64,000 nucleotides of DNA from Hyaloraphidium curvatum SAG 235-1 (Eukaryota; Fungi; Monoblepharomycota). Position 1 is the first letter of the stretch. Each line of letters starts with the position of its first letter. Below, piece by piece: positions 19,399-25,928 of this stretch. A program made the position numbers and the translations under genes. The stretch is taken from the NCBI GenBank assembly GCA_025558095.1, contig JAIVFI010000037.1, forward strand, positions 186,001-250,000, in the 5' to 3' direction. The notes beneath the pieces are model-generated. The model searched no databases. It was not told where the DNA came from and was given only the letters and a program-made list of their open reading frames with translations.

Positions 19399-19991
19399 AG
19401 TGCGCTGGAGCCTAGAAGCGCGAATATCGGGGACGTGCCGACTTTGCGAGGAACGGCGCGCGCGGTGATAGATGAGTCGCACGAGCCCCCGGCAGCAAGA
19501 ATTTAACAGGCTTCCACGAAGTCCACCGAAGCACCCACGGCGAGCTGGCGTGCCAAGAAGGAGCCGACGGCAAAGGGCACGGCGAGCGTGCGATCTTTGC
19601 GGCCTGCTGTAGCAGATACAGCGCCATGCCGAGGCGCTTGAGCGGGCACGCACACCCCGGACGCCGCCGCCGCGTCCCACGTCGTCCCCGCCCCGCCCGG
19701 CTTGGCCGGCAGCAGCGCGAGCCATTCCACGGGCGAGAAGCGCTCCGCCCGCGCCTTCTCCATCGGTGGCCGGCCCCGGCGACGTCCACGCGATCAGTTT
19801 TGATCGCGTACGCGGCGCTACTTCACTGCAAACGCGTTTTCCACGAAGAACGACACCGAGGTGCCGAGATTGGCAAAGCTAAAGGCTTCGCTCCTTTCGG
19901 GCACGGCGCGGCTCGCGCTTAGCCTTCGCCAACGCGGTGCCGAGCACAGCTCCTCTGTCTCCTGCACGTTCCCCCGAGTCATTTCGTGGAC

Positions 19992-21575
19992 ATGCCTGCA
20001 GTCGCGGCCAATGGAAACACGGAGAGCACCGCCAAGGATGGAGACAGCGTGTCCCTGGGGAATCTCGACGCGTCACCTACCTCTCGGCAAGCGACACCGT
20101 CAGCGCCGGTGCAGCTCTCCGGGGAGGACATGCTGGCGCTCTTCCCGTGGCTCCCGCCGCCAATCTCCTCGCTCGAGGACGGTGTTCCCGAGAACGCCGA
20201 GTTCGCGGCCGTCCGCGCGGCGAACCCGCTGGACCCGGGGAGCTTTCTGGACGCGCTGCGCGCCAGCCGCAGCACAGTTGCCCTCGAGCTGATCTGCCGC
20301 GCGGTTCTTCGCTATGGCTCATGGCACTTTAACATCCAAACTGCCCTTGTATGGTCCATTTGGGCCGCGTTACTTGGCGTTGCTTGGTGGTTTAGCTCGT
20401 CGAACTCGGCCCCGGCTTTCGGAACGGCGCAGCTTGCGGCGATGGCCCTGACTGTTTGGTCGGGATTAGCGCAGCTTCTGATCCTGAACGCGTTTTGGTC
20501 GCGGTCTAGGTGGCAGAAGGTGATGACCCGCTCGATGTCCAGCCCTGGCGCATCGCCCTTGGACATTCACCCTCTTGCCGGTTATGTTCGATGGCATCAA
20601 TTGGCTGCAGCCAAGAGCACATCATTGCTGCTGATTCATGACCCATCGGATTCAAGTTGCCCGTGCCCCCTGCCGGCGTGTGTCGGCAACCACCTGATCA
20701 AGTATGCTTGGTATCGCATTGCTGTCATGCTCGCCATCAGTTCCGTTCTCTTCTGCTTCGTATTCTTTCAGATGTACACCACCTTTATCTCTTTCTCGGC
20801 GCGATTCTGGGCCCAGTGGTGGTCCTACATCCTCGCTGCGCTAGCCCTGTCTCTTGGCGTGTCGCAGATCGCAACCACCTGGCCCGGCTTGAGCACGACC
20901 TCCAACGCCTACAGCCTCGACGTGGCTAGGCGCTTGCACCGGCGCGCCATGAAGCTGGCCATGCAATCGCTCCTGGCGCGCCTCAGATTCGCGCTCGCCC
21001 ATGGCGACGACGCAGTGCTTGACGAAGGGGACTGCGAGCTCTACGCGCGCCTGCACGACGAGTTGGCGGCGACCTGGCGGTACCGCTTCCCGTTACTCTC
21101 CCATTCCGGGACGGTATCGCTCTTCTGGGTCGTGGTTTTCGCGATCAACACCGTTATTACCGCCTCCGTAGGCTCCTGCGTACCCGCATAGTACATTTCC
21201 ATATTCGTCTTTGCACTCATCACGATCACGGCGGACCTGCTCAACCTCTCCTACAACAACGCGCAGATCTCGCAGGCGGTGGACCTGTACACGGACGCAC
21301 GGCACGCGATCGCGGCCATGGTCGTCGCGGCGCAGAGCGGGCCTGCCTCGGGATGGAAGAGGGATCTCGTGGCGAGGATGTGGGGCCACGACGCGCTGCT
21401 GGCTTCGTTCCTGGACGTGTCGCGGTACAAAGGGCAGTTCCTGGGCTTCACGGTGGATTTCGGGTTCACGCGGAGCCTGCTCATCACCGTGTTTACCGTG
21501 ATCATCGGCCTCGTGTCGATCTTGCGGGGCTCGGGGCTTTTCGTCTCGCTGGATTACGTCTGCCCGAGCAGGTGA
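19992..21575 (+). pseudogene. 7-TM membrane protein, paralog 2, with a single in-frame TAG at 21189-21191
   Basis: ORFs 19986-21191 and 21279-21575 are in the same frame. Reading through gives GSCVPA*YISIFVFALITITADLLNLSYNNAQI, collinear with paralogs 1 and 3. Confidence 0.7.
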
Positions 21576-21944
21576 TGATCGACTGCGAGATTGGGCGGAC
21601 CTCGCTCGAAGGACGCCAGTGGGAGCGTGGGCGGTACACAAGGTGCGCTGAAGGGCGCACAACCTGGGATTGTGATGGTGTGCTTGCAGGTCAAGGCCCA
21701 GCTGCAGCTGGACGATTCAAAGTAGATGTTTCGAGATGCCTTTGTTTCTGATCGCATCCGGCAAGTGACCCAATCCGCGTCCCAACGTCATCTGCTCCGC
21801 CACAAACTCACCTCTGTGACAATACTCACATGTACGCCTGGATGGCTAGCTCCTCATTACACCCACGCCACCCCTCTCATAACCTTCTCAATTCACGTCC
21901 TCACCCGGCGTGCACCTCTTTACGGAAACCGCCCGCCCCTGCAA

Positions 21945-22268
21945 ATGGTACGTGCCTGCCCGCCGCAACCGCACTCCCGCGCTGACCCCCCGCAGGCCCG
22001 CACCATGCAGACGGCGCGGAGGAGCACCTCGAAGTCCGGCCCGCGCCCGAGTGGCAAACCCCGGAAACCCGCGCACGGGAAGGACAAGGCCGCAGATGGG
22101 GGGACCAAGGCGGTGGGCAAGGCGGGAAAGGTATCCCCGGGAGCTCGGAAGCGTGCGGTGCCGGTGCCGGGCGGGCGCATCCTGCGGCCGAGGGCGGCGA
22201 AGAAGGAGGAGGTCGGATCCGGGGGCAGGGTGGGCGCGAGGTGGCCTGGATGTGCTGGATGTGACTGA
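21945..22268 (+). CDS. Small basic protein starting with a histone H3 N-tail-like sequence (MARTMQTARRST), no histone fold; intron 21948-21995
   Basis: ATG followed directly by a strong 48-nt intron (GTACGT...GCTGAC...CGCAG). Spliced product is about 91 aa and K/R/G/P-rich. The 3' end is uncertain. Confidence 0.65.
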   Translation: MVRACPPQPHSRADPPQARTMQTARRSTSKSGPRPSGKPRKPAHGKDKAADGGTKAVGKAGKVSPGARKRAVPVPGGRILRPRAAKKEEVGSGGRVGARWPGCAGCD

Positions 22269-22516
22269 TTGACCGAACTGGCAGTGACGCATCGGCTTCC
22301 TGCTAGGTGCAGATGATGAGGCGAGGTGGATATTCCAGTGCGGTTGAGCACGGGCACAGGGGTGAAGAGAACTGTAACAGACCGCACATATTCAGACTAT
22401 ATCTGACCTGGCCTACGTCCTGCCGTCACGGGTTGCTTGCCGTCCGACGAGGGGCTCTTGGTAGGCCTACACAGCGCGAACTGAGACCCCGAAATCGATC
22501 CCACATTCCGCCGCCG

Positions 22517-24967
22517 ATGAGCGCGCCTCGGGGCAGTTTGGAGGACCGGCTGCGAGCGGCGAGCGCGGCGGGCGACGCCGCCGCCGTGGAGCGGTACCTT
22601 TCCGCGGGCGCCGACCCGAACGCGAAGGACGCAGCTGGCCACTCGTGCTTCACTCTCGCGTGCCTGCGCGGCCACGCCGCCATCGTGGACCGCCTGCTAA
22701 AGGACCCGCGGGTCGATGTGGGTTCGGTGGACGCCGTCGGCTATAATGCCCTGTGCCTAGCCGCCCGGTACGACCCGCGGGGGGCATCCGTGGACCTCCT
22801 CCTCGCCGACGCGCGCACGGACGTCAACCACTCGGGCGCAGACGGCTGGACCCCTTTAATGCTCGCCGCCTTCTACGAACCCACCGGTGCCGTGGCAGAG
22901 AAGATCCTGCGGCACCGAAGGACGGACGTCAACGCCGCAAACAGGTCCGGCAACACCGCGCTGATCCTGGCGGCCCAACAGGGGCACGCCCGCGCGCTGG
23001 CCGCCCTTCTGCGCCGCCACGACGCCGACTTGAACGCACGCAACTCGCACGGAAATACGGCGCTGGTCATGGCCTGCGTCAACGGCCGGACGGAGGCGGT
23101 CGCCCTGCTCGCCCGGGACCCGCGCGTGGACCTCAATCTGGCGAACGGGTACGGCAAGACCGCGGCGGACTACGCCAGCCCCGCCTTGCGGCCCGTGCTG
23201 CAAGCCGCCACCGACGAGCGCCGGCGCAGGGAGGCCCAGGCCGCCGCCGAGCGCGCGGCGGCGGAGCGCGCCTACCGCGAGAAGCTGGCCGAGGAGGCCC
23301 GCCGCCTCGAGGCCGAACGCGCGCGGGCGGAACTCGAGCGCCAGAGGCGCGAGGCCGAGATCGACGCCGAGCGGCGGAGGCGGGAAGCCGAGATCGAGTC
23401 CGATCGCAGGCGGCGCGAGGCCGAGCTCGACGCGGAGCGCCGCCGCGCGGAGGTCGAGCGGCAGAAGAAGGAGGCCGAGGCCGAGGCCGCGCGCAGGCTA
23501 CGCGCGGAGCAGGAAGCGGCGGCTCTCGCGGCCAAGCGGCTTCGGGACGAGCAGGAGGCCGCCGCCGCGGCGGCGCTCCGCCGGCGGGCAGAGGAGGAAG
23601 CCGCGGCCGCCGCGGCGCTGCAGCGCCGCCAGACCGAGACGGAGCTCCTCGAGCGACAGCTCCGCCTCCGCCAACGGGAGGAGGAGGCCGCGCGCGCCGC
23701 GGCGGCGGAGATTGCGAGGAAGGAGGCGCTGGCGAGGCGGCTGCGCGAGCACGAGGAGGGGCAGCTCCGCCTGCGGAGGGAGGCCGAGGCCGCCGAGGCG
23801 CGGCGGAGGAGGGAGGAGGAGGAGCGCGCGCACAAGCTCAGGGAGGAGGAGGAGAGATTGCGGCTGGAGCTCAGGCAGCAGGAGGTCGCGGTGCTCGCCG
23901 AGCAGGTGCGGCTGCAGGAGAAGCTGGCGGCGCTGCAGCTCCTGCAGGTCGAGGGCGGCAAGTCGACGGGCGCGGCCGGCAAACCCGGATCCGAGGGCAC
24001 CCTGGGCGGCTCGTCGGGCTCGATCGGCTCCGCGTCGTCCTCGGGCGTCTCCAAGCTCCGCGTCGACGCATCGGACGTGGCCATGACGGACCGCGTTCTG
24101 GGCGAGGGCGCGTTCGGGATCGTGCGCGAGGGCGTGCTCAGGGGATCCACGAGGGTGGCGGTAAAGACGATCAAGGCGGGGATGGCGATGGACGCCGAGG
24201 TGATGAAGGCGTTCGTGGCCGAGGTCAGGGTGTGGGAGGGGCTCAACCAGAAGAGTGGGTGGCATGGTCGGCCCCGTTCCATTGCTTCTGCTGACCTACA
24301 GCCGCCTCTTTCCAGACATCCTTCCGCTGCTTGCCTACTGCGAGTCGCCGCCCATGATGATCTCCGAGATCGTGCGGGGCGGGAACCTCAGGTCGCACAT
24401 GACCAAGCTCGGCTGGCCTATAGACAGGGGCCTGCGGCTGCTTACGGACGTGGCCGCGGGTATGGCCTTCCTGCACAGCTTCTCGGTGCTCCACGGGGAC
24501 CTGAAGAGGTAGGGCCCGATGATCCCGCCCGACAGGTCGTCTACCTAACCCCATCCCGCCGCCACAGCCTGAACATCCTCGTCGACCGCGACACCGCCAA
24601 GATCGCCGACTTTGGCCTCGCCCGCGTGCGCGAGGCCATGGCCCGCACCACCGCCAGCGCCGGCGTCAGCGGCACCGTCGGCTTCCTAGCCCCCGAGCGT
24701 TACGAGGGCATCCTCAAGCACCCCGCGGACGTCTACGCGTTCTCCATGTGCATGTACGAGGTCGTGTCTGGGGGCAAGTTCCCGTTCGAGGGGATGCTCC
24801 CCATCGCGGTGATCAAGAAGGTCTGCTACGACCGCGAACGTCCGCCGCGGCCCGAGGGGACCCCCGACAGGGCGTGGGGTCTCATGGAGCGCGCGTGGGC
24901 GCAGGATCCGGCGGCCAGGCCGGGTTTTGTGGAGGTCAGGGACGAGATGGAGATGTGGGAGGAGTGA
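22517..24967 (+). CDS. Ankyrin-repeat + coiled-coil + TKL protein kinase, 3 exons
   Basis: About 6 ankyrin repeats, a long E/R/A-rich helix, GEGAFGIV, VAVK, spliced HGDLKSLN, DFG, GTVGFLAPE. Introns at 24255-24315 and about 24509-24567. Confidence 0.9.
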   Translation: MSAPRGSLEDRLRAASAAGDAAAVERYLSAGADPNAKDAAGHSCFTLACLRGHAAIVDRLLKDPRVDVGSVDAVGYNALCLAARYDPRGASVDLLLADARTDVNHSGADGWTPLMLAAFYEPTGAVAEKILRHRRTDVNAANRSGNTALILAAQQGHARALAALLRRHDADLNARNSHGNTALVMACVNGRTEAVALLARDPRVDLNLANGYGKTAADYASPALRPVLQAATDERRRREAQAAAERAAAERAYREKLAEEARRLEAERARAELERQRREAEIDAERRRREAEIESDRRRREAELDAERRRAEVERQKKEAEAEAARRLRAEQEAAALAAKRLRDEQEAAAAAALRRRAEEEAAAAAALQRRQTETELLERQLRLRQREEEAARAAAAEIARKEALARRLREHEEGQLRLRREAEAAEARRRREEEERAHKLREEEERLRLELRQQEVAVLAEQVRLQEKLAALQLLQVEGGKSTGAAGKPGSEGTLGGSSGSIGSASSSGVSKLRVDASDVAMTDRVLGEGAFGIVREGVLRGSTRVAVKTIKAGMAMDAEVMKAFVAEVRVWEGLNQKSGWHGRPRSIASADLQPPLSRHPSAACLLRVAAHDDLRDRAGREPQVAHDQARLAYRQGPAAAYGRGRGYGLPAQLLGAPRGPEEVGPDDPARQVVYLTPSRRHSLNILVDRDTAKIADFGLARVREAMARTTASAGVSGTVGFLAPERYEGILKHPADVYAFSMCMYEVVSGGKFPFEGMLPIAVIKKVCYDRERPPRPEGTPDRAWGLMERAWAQDPAARPGFVEVRDEMEMWEE

Positions 24968-25307: not shown

Positions 25308-25928
25308 ATGGCCACGCTTACCGCAACCCGCCCCGACGAACTGGCCTACGGCCAAGACAAGCACGACCCCGCGCGCACCGTCGCCGCGCTTTCCCTCTCG
25401 AGGCCCAAGCGGGCGCAGGCGCTCGACCCCCTGCTCACCTACTCTGAGCAGCCGGAGTCCGAGGCGCCCTGCTCGCACCCCCACCCCGCCCCCCCGGTCG
25501 CCGCGGCGGATCCCAACACGGCCTGGCGAGCCAGGTTCGCCAACAAGTCGGACCTGTGCAACCTCCGCCCGAAGGCGCATCCCCACGACGCCCGCTCGGA
25601 CATGGGCCCCTTCGCCTTCTTCGATCTGCCAGCGGACCTTCTACCCGAGGTCTTCCGGTACCTGCACGACTGCGAGCTTCTGAAGCTCTCGGCGGCGAGC
25701 AAGCAGGCGTACCGCGCCTGCGCCCCCGAGTTCCGGTACCGCGTCGAGCGCATCGTGAAGGGGCAGCTCAAGCTGGACGTGGACAGGCCGCGCAAGGCCG
25801 TCGCTGAGGCGCACCAGCACCTCGAGGCCCTGCACGCCGCGATGGGGACCTCGCTGGCGATCGGGGTCAAAGTGGACTACCAGAAGGGATTCCCCAGGAC
25901 CTACCTGAAGGCGTGCAGCATCATGTGA
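25308..25928 (+). CDS. F-box domain protein
   Basis: FFDLPADLLPEVFRYLHDCELLKLSAASKQAYRAC fits the F-box consensus. Confidence 0.7.
   Translation: MATLTATRPDELAYGQDKHDPARTVAALSLSRPKRAQALDPLLTYSEQPESEAPCSHPHPAPPVAAADPNTAWRARFANKSDLCNLRPKAHPHDARSDMGPFAFFDLPADLLPEVFRYLHDCELLKLSAASKQAYRACAPEFRYRVERIVKGQLKLDVDRPRKAVAEAHQHLEALHAAMGTSLAIGVKVDYQKGFPRTYLKACSIM

Follow-up and report, generated by a model that had tools for sequence, protein, structure and literature searches.

A small gene lies on the plus strand of a contig of Hyaloraphidium curvatum, a fungus of the Monoblepharidomycetes, where it is flanked by a 7-TM receptor-like gene and an ankyrin-TKL kinase gene. The genome searched comprises 31.9 Mb in 55 contigs, and positions are given within the window, the whole 64-kb stretch that was analysed (contig C37:186001-250000). 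The mini-gene is unannotated and missing from public protein sets. It consists of three exons and is transcribed, both of its introns being absent from RNA contigs of one public run (Table 1). These contigs carry GT..AG deletions relative to the genome and are therefore derived from spliced RNA; they drop rare isoforms and show neither transcript starts nor transcript ends.

Table 1. Features of the mini-gene, in positions of the window.
Feature	Positions	Strand	Remarks
Start codon ATG	21945..21947	+	3' end of exon 1; context caaATGg; RNA contig colinear to 21947
Intron 1, 48 nt, GTACGT...CTGAC...CAG	21948..21995	+	Directly behind the ATG; RNA joint 21946/21995, GT..AG, cut +1
Exon 2, whole coding body, 78 codons	21996..22229	+	Rich in G/A/R/K/P
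H3-like segment ARTMQTARRST	21996..22028	+	H3 residues 1-11 with K4M and K9R
Intron 2, 55 nt, GTGGGC...CAG	22230..22284	+	Absent from RNA contig 1; joint 22228/22284, GT..AG, cut +1
Exon 3	22285..22397	+	TGA stop at 22285-22287, then non-coding-like; GC 0.55, no GC3 periodicity

The first RNA contig follows the genome without interruption from about 19949 across the 7-TM gene up to the end of the ATG. It then skips intron 1, holds the whole of exon 2, skips intron 2 and ends at 22397. The spliced open reading frame is made of Met and 78 codons, that is 79 residues, and exon 3 opens with its TGA stop. As the ATG closes exon 1, exon 2 is filled by the frame from end to end. An earlier sequence-only reading had described an ATG followed by a 48-nt intron and an H3-like start, and had called for the transcript to be defined from RNA. 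The sequence is as described, and the RNA contigs show both transcription and removal of the two introns, the predicted one included. The product of about 91 residues that it had proposed is replaced by the 79-residue form, because a second intron that had not been predicted brings in the TGA directly after exon 2; the longer form would need retention of this intron. It had also put forward an alternative intron at 22212-22306 that would fuse the product to the downstream kinase. This intron is not seen in the RNA contigs, and the one used leads straight to the stop. The kinase fusion was rejected, save as a conceivable minor form of the kind that contigs drop, on the further grounds that no contig bridges 22398-22495, that 22307-22516 lacks coding-like GC3 and that the public kinase protein starts at ATG 22517.

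An NCBI protein of Hyaloraphidium curvatum (776 aa) matches the downstream kinase at 100% identity. A second RNA contig spans 22496-25401 with the kinase introns 24255-24315 (61 nt) and about 24509-24567 (59 nt) removed and, together with the public protein, supports a 776-aa ankyrin/coiled-coil/TKL kinase. It continues across 340 nt into the next same-strand ORF, 25308-25928. The adapter-tipped contig ends at 22397 and 22496 were considered as transcript ends and dropped, because the end at 25401 is likewise adapter-tipped and lies inside the next ORF. The 98 nt at 22398-22495 have no RNA contig coverage. As other same-strand neighbours are bridged by contigs, this gap probably reflects a genuine spacer between genes, very short and with the kinase promoter in it.

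Exon 2 has a GC content of 0.74, with GC3 of 0.86 in the frame of the ART string versus 0.67 and 0.68 at codon positions 1 and 2. On the 5' side of ATG 21945, a stretch of 219 nt has a GC content of 0.55 and no periodicity. Codon log-odds were trained on 15 long ORFs of the window. The ART frame scores +0.08 per codon and the other two plus-strand frames -0.52 and -0.24; reference windows average +0.38 in frame (SD 0.29) and -0.58 off frame (SD 0.24). The ART frame thus lies 1 SD under the in-frame mean and 2.7 SD over the off-frame mean: it is the best plus-strand frame and is only moderately coding-like. One reverse frame reaches +0.14, as expected for a wobble-aligned antisense frame. A gene on the minus strand was rejected, as the RNA shows both introns to be GT..AG on the plus strand only. 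Splicing and coding statistics together favour ATG 21945, and this ATG, exon 2 and the TGA at 22285 form the only coding-like open frame of the mini-gene.

ATG 21945 has A at -3 and G at +4. Four ATGs lie upstream of it (21726, 21736, 21830 and 21842), the one at 21726 being in frame and open through 21945. Judged from the sequence, transcription must start within 21843-21944 for ATG 21945 to come first and Ala to be residue 2, and a start farther upstream would bury the ART end behind these ATGs. The second RNA contig begins 21 nt upstream of the kinase ATG. Short leaders would fit a compact genome, a point that is only suggestive.

The codons from 21996 onward read ARTMQTARRSTSKSGPRPSGKPRKP... 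and their translation resembles the tail of histone H3. The genome holds five canonical H3 genes (C3:246876, C10:158343, C10:182771, C11:452100 and C11:629634), all of which encode M-ARTKQTARKS[TS]GGKAPRKQ... and none of which has an intron behind the ATG (0/5). The tails are identical in four of the five genes, the C3 copy carrying S11 and T28/T31 variants. On C10, the two copies are almost identical and lie in inverted orientation about 24 kb apart.

Compared with residues 1-11 of these H3 proteins, the mini-gene product is identical at 9 of 11 positions, and at the DNA level 28 of 33 nucleotides are identical to three of the five genes. BLASTP against the H3 tail gives 11/17 identities (E 4e-4, as a single comparison), and blastn against H3 DNA gives 34 nt at 85%. 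Three of the five nucleotide differences are synonymous (in T6, A7 and R8). The other two are non-synonymous and both fall in Lys codons: K4M is AAG to ATG (22005-22007) and K9R is AAG to AGG. These are the only two lysines of residues 1-11. The four phospho-acceptors T3, T6, S10 and T11 are retained. The 9/11 match with K4M and K9R, claimed from general knowledge of H3, is therefore present as an exact pattern in the aligned H3 genes of the fungus itself. Homology beyond residue 11 was considered and rejected: pairs such as GKPRK/GKAPRK and ARKRAVPVPGG/ARKSAPATGG are no better than composition-matched shuffles, of which 1842 and 2551 out of 5000 attain the observed score, and 1842 is the number for similarity beyond residue 11. 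The similarity between the 5' UTR of the mini-gene and those of the H3 genes is not significant.

A search of the whole genome with the Pfam profile PF00125 gave 20 matches, none of them on contig C37, and local tblastn with H3 exons found no histone-fold remnant within 2 kb of the mini-gene. On this basis we rejected a pseudogene left by decay of H3 or CenH3 and hiding a fold, as neither the contig nor the 2 kb around the mini-gene yielded a remnant. That the product has no histone fold, as claimed earlier, is borne out by the lack of a Pfam match and of any helix predicted by AlphaFold2. Without a histone fold, the product of the mini-gene is not a histone H3.

The predicted product minus its initiator Met has 78 residues, a pI of 12.0 and a net charge of +18, and 54 of the 78 residues are G, A, R, K or P. 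The AlphaFold2 model shows no secondary structure (pTM 0.11). Homologs were searched with exon 2, which corresponds to the full product minus the initiator Met. None was found by a word search of proteins or in metagenome contigs. An exhaustive HMMER search of 1.84 billion representative proteins gave 0 matches at E <= 0.001 and thus did not return even the product itself, and a Pfam search with the ORF assigned no family. In the genome of the fungus itself exon 2 matches only itself and low-complexity noise at E >= 0.1, so that no paralog is seen. The best ESM Atlas feature reaches 0.77, under any useful level. As neither homolog nor paralog was found, there is no sign of purifying selection beyond the 11 codons. 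The Protein Data Bank search returned three weak matches, two of which are unrelated proteins. The third (E 0.49) is the 20-mer 4fwf_E, ARTMQTARKSTGGKAPRK, from what we take to be an LSD2 complex. The first 8 residues of the mini-gene product, ARTMQTAR, are those of this synthetic H3K4M peptide (PDB 4fwf chain E).

The mini-gene may be an expressed relic or a young orphan. Patch repair or partial duplication would have brought about 34 nt from the 5' coding end of an H3 gene into a GC-rich frame that happens to be transcribed and spliced. Its product would have no function dependent on H3 likeness, and K4M and K9R would be two single-base mutations. Such an origin agrees with the sharp end of the H3 homology after 34 nt, with a 5' UTR unlike those of the H3 genes, with the lack of a fold remnant within 2 kb, and with the failure to find homologs or paralogs among proteins, metagenome contigs and the fungal genome. 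It also agrees with the low complexity of a product that has no predicted secondary structure, and long open frames arise easily in a genome of 65-70% GC. However, neutral decay would hardly leave 9 of 11 residues intact and strike the two lysines alone, as two random hits among 11 positions have a probability of 1/55 of falling on both; nor is it favoured by the finding that three of the five nucleotide differences are synonymous. Moreover, two spliced introns delimit the frame exactly, and its GC3 is coding-like. On balance a relic is quite possible, if short of probable. It would then show neatly how a histone-gene fragment can seed an orphan ORF that is spliced yet unannotated.

It is unlikely, in our judgement, that the locus holds no independent coding gene and that ATG 21945 is not an initiator, the exons belonging instead to an intron-bearing 3' UTR of the 7-TM gene, to a read-through of it, or to the kinase mRNA, as its leader or as an upstream ORF. 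That the first contig is unbroken between about 19949 and 22397, with the 7-TM gene inside it, would be explained in this way, as would the four upstream ATGs and the absence of the mini-gene from public protein sets, and contigs cannot reveal where transcripts start or end. However, the second contig also joins two genes of one strand, the kinase and the one after it, and extends to 25401 in ORF 25308-25928. Merging of neighbours is thus usual in this RNA assembly, and the first contig says nothing on whether a single mRNA exists. A 3' UTR with two introns would be out of the ordinary, and nonsense-mediated decay would be its normal consequence. In addition, the composition turns coding-like exactly over exon 2, and no contig joins 22397 to 22496.

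The pattern ARTxQTAR occurs at 10 sites in the 31.9-Mb genome, namely the five H3 genes, the mini-gene and four others. The reversed control pattern occurs at 4 sites, so the 8-mer alone is unremarkable. None of the four other sites lies behind a Met or continues like H3. For the longer pattern ARTxQTAR[KR]ST, the expectation per genome is about 0.001 from composition to 0.003 from the empirical control, both values ignoring the position behind a start codon. The ART string starts exactly at an RNA-proven exon start behind an ATG. Pure coincidence, in which GC-rich DNA with a frame rich in Ala, Arg and Thr spells out an H3-like string by accident, could draw on the four non-histone sites, on the equal number for the reversed control and on the very many windows scanned, among which some coincidences are expected, but it is very improbable given the rarity of the [KR]-S-T extension, the start of the string at the proven exon boundary and the match of its codons to those of the H3 genes. 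We conclude that the H3 resemblance is not due to chance; most likely the 33 H3-like nucleotides descend from a fragment of an H3 gene or have been selected for likeness to one.

Our preferred reading is that the product works through H3-tail mimicry, as a decoy. We hold it tentatively, as possible rather than probable, and the mini-gene would count as a histone-tail mimic on condition that it is translated. Methionine aminopeptidase removes Met before Ala. Its action would leave the mature N-terminus A-R-T-M-Q-T-A-R-R-S-T, with Ala1-Arg2-Thr3 free as in H3. The basic clusters KPRKP, ARKRA and RPRAAKK could provide for nuclear import, and the free Ala1-Arg2-Thr3 end may then occupy pockets made for the H3 N-terminus. 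In the substrate channel of SET1/COMPASS, Met4 would be placed as in K-to-M histones; further pockets may perhaps be offered by KDM5, WDR5-type arginine pockets, PHD fingers and mitotic H3 kinases. As positions 4 and 9 could be neither methylated nor acetylated, the product would compete in soluble form, as a decoy or damper. The remaining 67 residues would be unrelated filler or a DNA- or nuclear-targeting tail. With the four phospho-acceptors kept and R8-R9-S10 forming a good basophilic-kinase site, a role as substrate or decoy of a mitotic H3 kinase would be equally open.

Candidate targets were sought in the genome. A Set1 gene is present on contig C27, with an N-SET domain and SET motifs, its SET domain being split over at least 3 exons, and a KDM5-like gene with a PLU-1 domain is present on contig C34. 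LSD1 is the best-known K4M-trapped enzyme and represents the strongest known K4M-binding class. It had been named as a target in the sequence-only reading. A genome-wide search for an LSD1-type gene, which would combine SWIRM and amine oxidase, gave 8 SWIRM and 40 amine-oxidase matches, none of them adjoining. C30 is the only contig with both, about 178 kb apart. Judging by these searches, the fungus seems to be without an LSD1-type demethylase despite its many SWIRM proteins. With 0/8 SWIRM matches near any amine-oxidase match, LSD1 is probably not the target, and the earlier proposal is weakened to that extent. The SWIRM sites are C31:277419, C36:224522, C16:434764, C11:53655, C17:684037, C14:620054, C23:677272 and C30:386071.

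Natural histone-tail mimics are few; EZHIP is K27M-like and the H3TMs resemble the first four residues of H3. Influenza NS1 and G9a are further examples. K4M histones and peptides inhibit H3K4 methylation or trap K4 demethylases. By analogy, the mini-gene might resemble H3, the H3TMs and EZHIP in its mode of action. Its likeness to the H3 or CenH3 of the fungus is limited to the N-terminal 11 residues and their codons, and unlike the H3 genes it has no histone fold and has an intron directly behind the ATG.

The H3TMs (PCLAF/PAF15, VRK1, BCL11A/B, SALL and FOG) share the motif M-Z-R-X-K; their Met is removed, they resemble A1-R2-T3-K4 and they dock on PHD fingers or RBBP4/NuRD (Chen et al. 2021, PMC8166343). 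The first rule for this group is removal of Met before a permissive residue (A, G, S, C, T, P or V) (PMC8166343). The mini-gene mRNA, with ATG|GCC CGC, encodes M-A-R and thus a permissive residue followed by Arg2, and PCLAF is also small and disordered. However, the H3TMs have a methylatable Lys4 where the mini-gene product has Met4, so that it fails the strict motif. The H3 likeness also extends over about 4-5 residues in the H3TMs compared to 11 (9 identical) here, and no sequence relationship to any H3TM appears among the 1.84 billion representative proteins.

EZHIP (CXorf67) is a natural non-histone, K27M-like inhibitor of PRC2 (bioRxiv 10.1101/585729). Like the mini-gene product, it is a disordered non-histone protein in which Met replaces the target Lys, as seen here in ARTMQTAR versus ARTKQTAR. 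It differs in being an internal K27 mimic restricted to eutherian mammals, with PRC2 inhibition shown experimentally, whereas the mini-gene is fungal and would encode an N-terminal K4 mimic with K9R. The two are without detectable homology (zero matches at E <= 0.001 in the 1.84 billion representative proteins).

A transgene for H3.3K4M inhibits H3K4 methylation and destabilises MLL3/4 (bioRxiv 10.1101/301986). The first 8 residues of engineered H3K4M, ARTMQTAR, are identical to those of the mini-gene product. The engineered forms are laboratory constructs on full H3 or on 20-21-mers, whereas the mini-gene adds K9R and an unrelated basic tail of 67 residues. Furthermore, the LSD-type enzyme, presumably the partner in 4fwf, has no evident counterpart in the genome. 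A full-text literature search for the string ARTMQTAR returned no paper, and no natural K4M-type mimic turned up.

The most specific form of the mimicry reading is an endogenous, soluble, onco-histone-like K4M/K9R tail. It would tune genome-wide methylation of H3K4, and perhaps of K9, through Set1/COMPASS and other pockets for the H3 N-terminus, and would be the first natural K4M mimic and the first non-mammalian counterpart of EZHIP, of independent origin. We consider this form improbable. Should the product exist and bind the machinery of H3K4, K-to-M inhibition would have evolved as a physiological regulator outside mammals, and a genetically encoded, lysine-free H3 tail would be a probe for COMPASS, KDM5, WDR5 and PHD biology.

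Two further observations concern the flanking genes. A third RNA contig (4052 nt) matches the kinase domain only at 24486-24506 and 24721-24742 (21-22 nt), and the rest of it diverges; a paralogous ankyrin-TKL kinase is the most likely source of this transcript. Finally, the upstream 7-TM (GR/OR-like) gene at 19986-21575 on the plus strand carries an in-frame TAG at 21189-21191 (CCC GCA TAG TAC), and its frame is open again at 21279-21575, where it encodes the final transmembrane helix. At 21189-21191 the RNA contig follows the genome unspliced, so the mature RNA contains the TAG; this points to read-through, truncation of the product or a pseudogene of recent origin.
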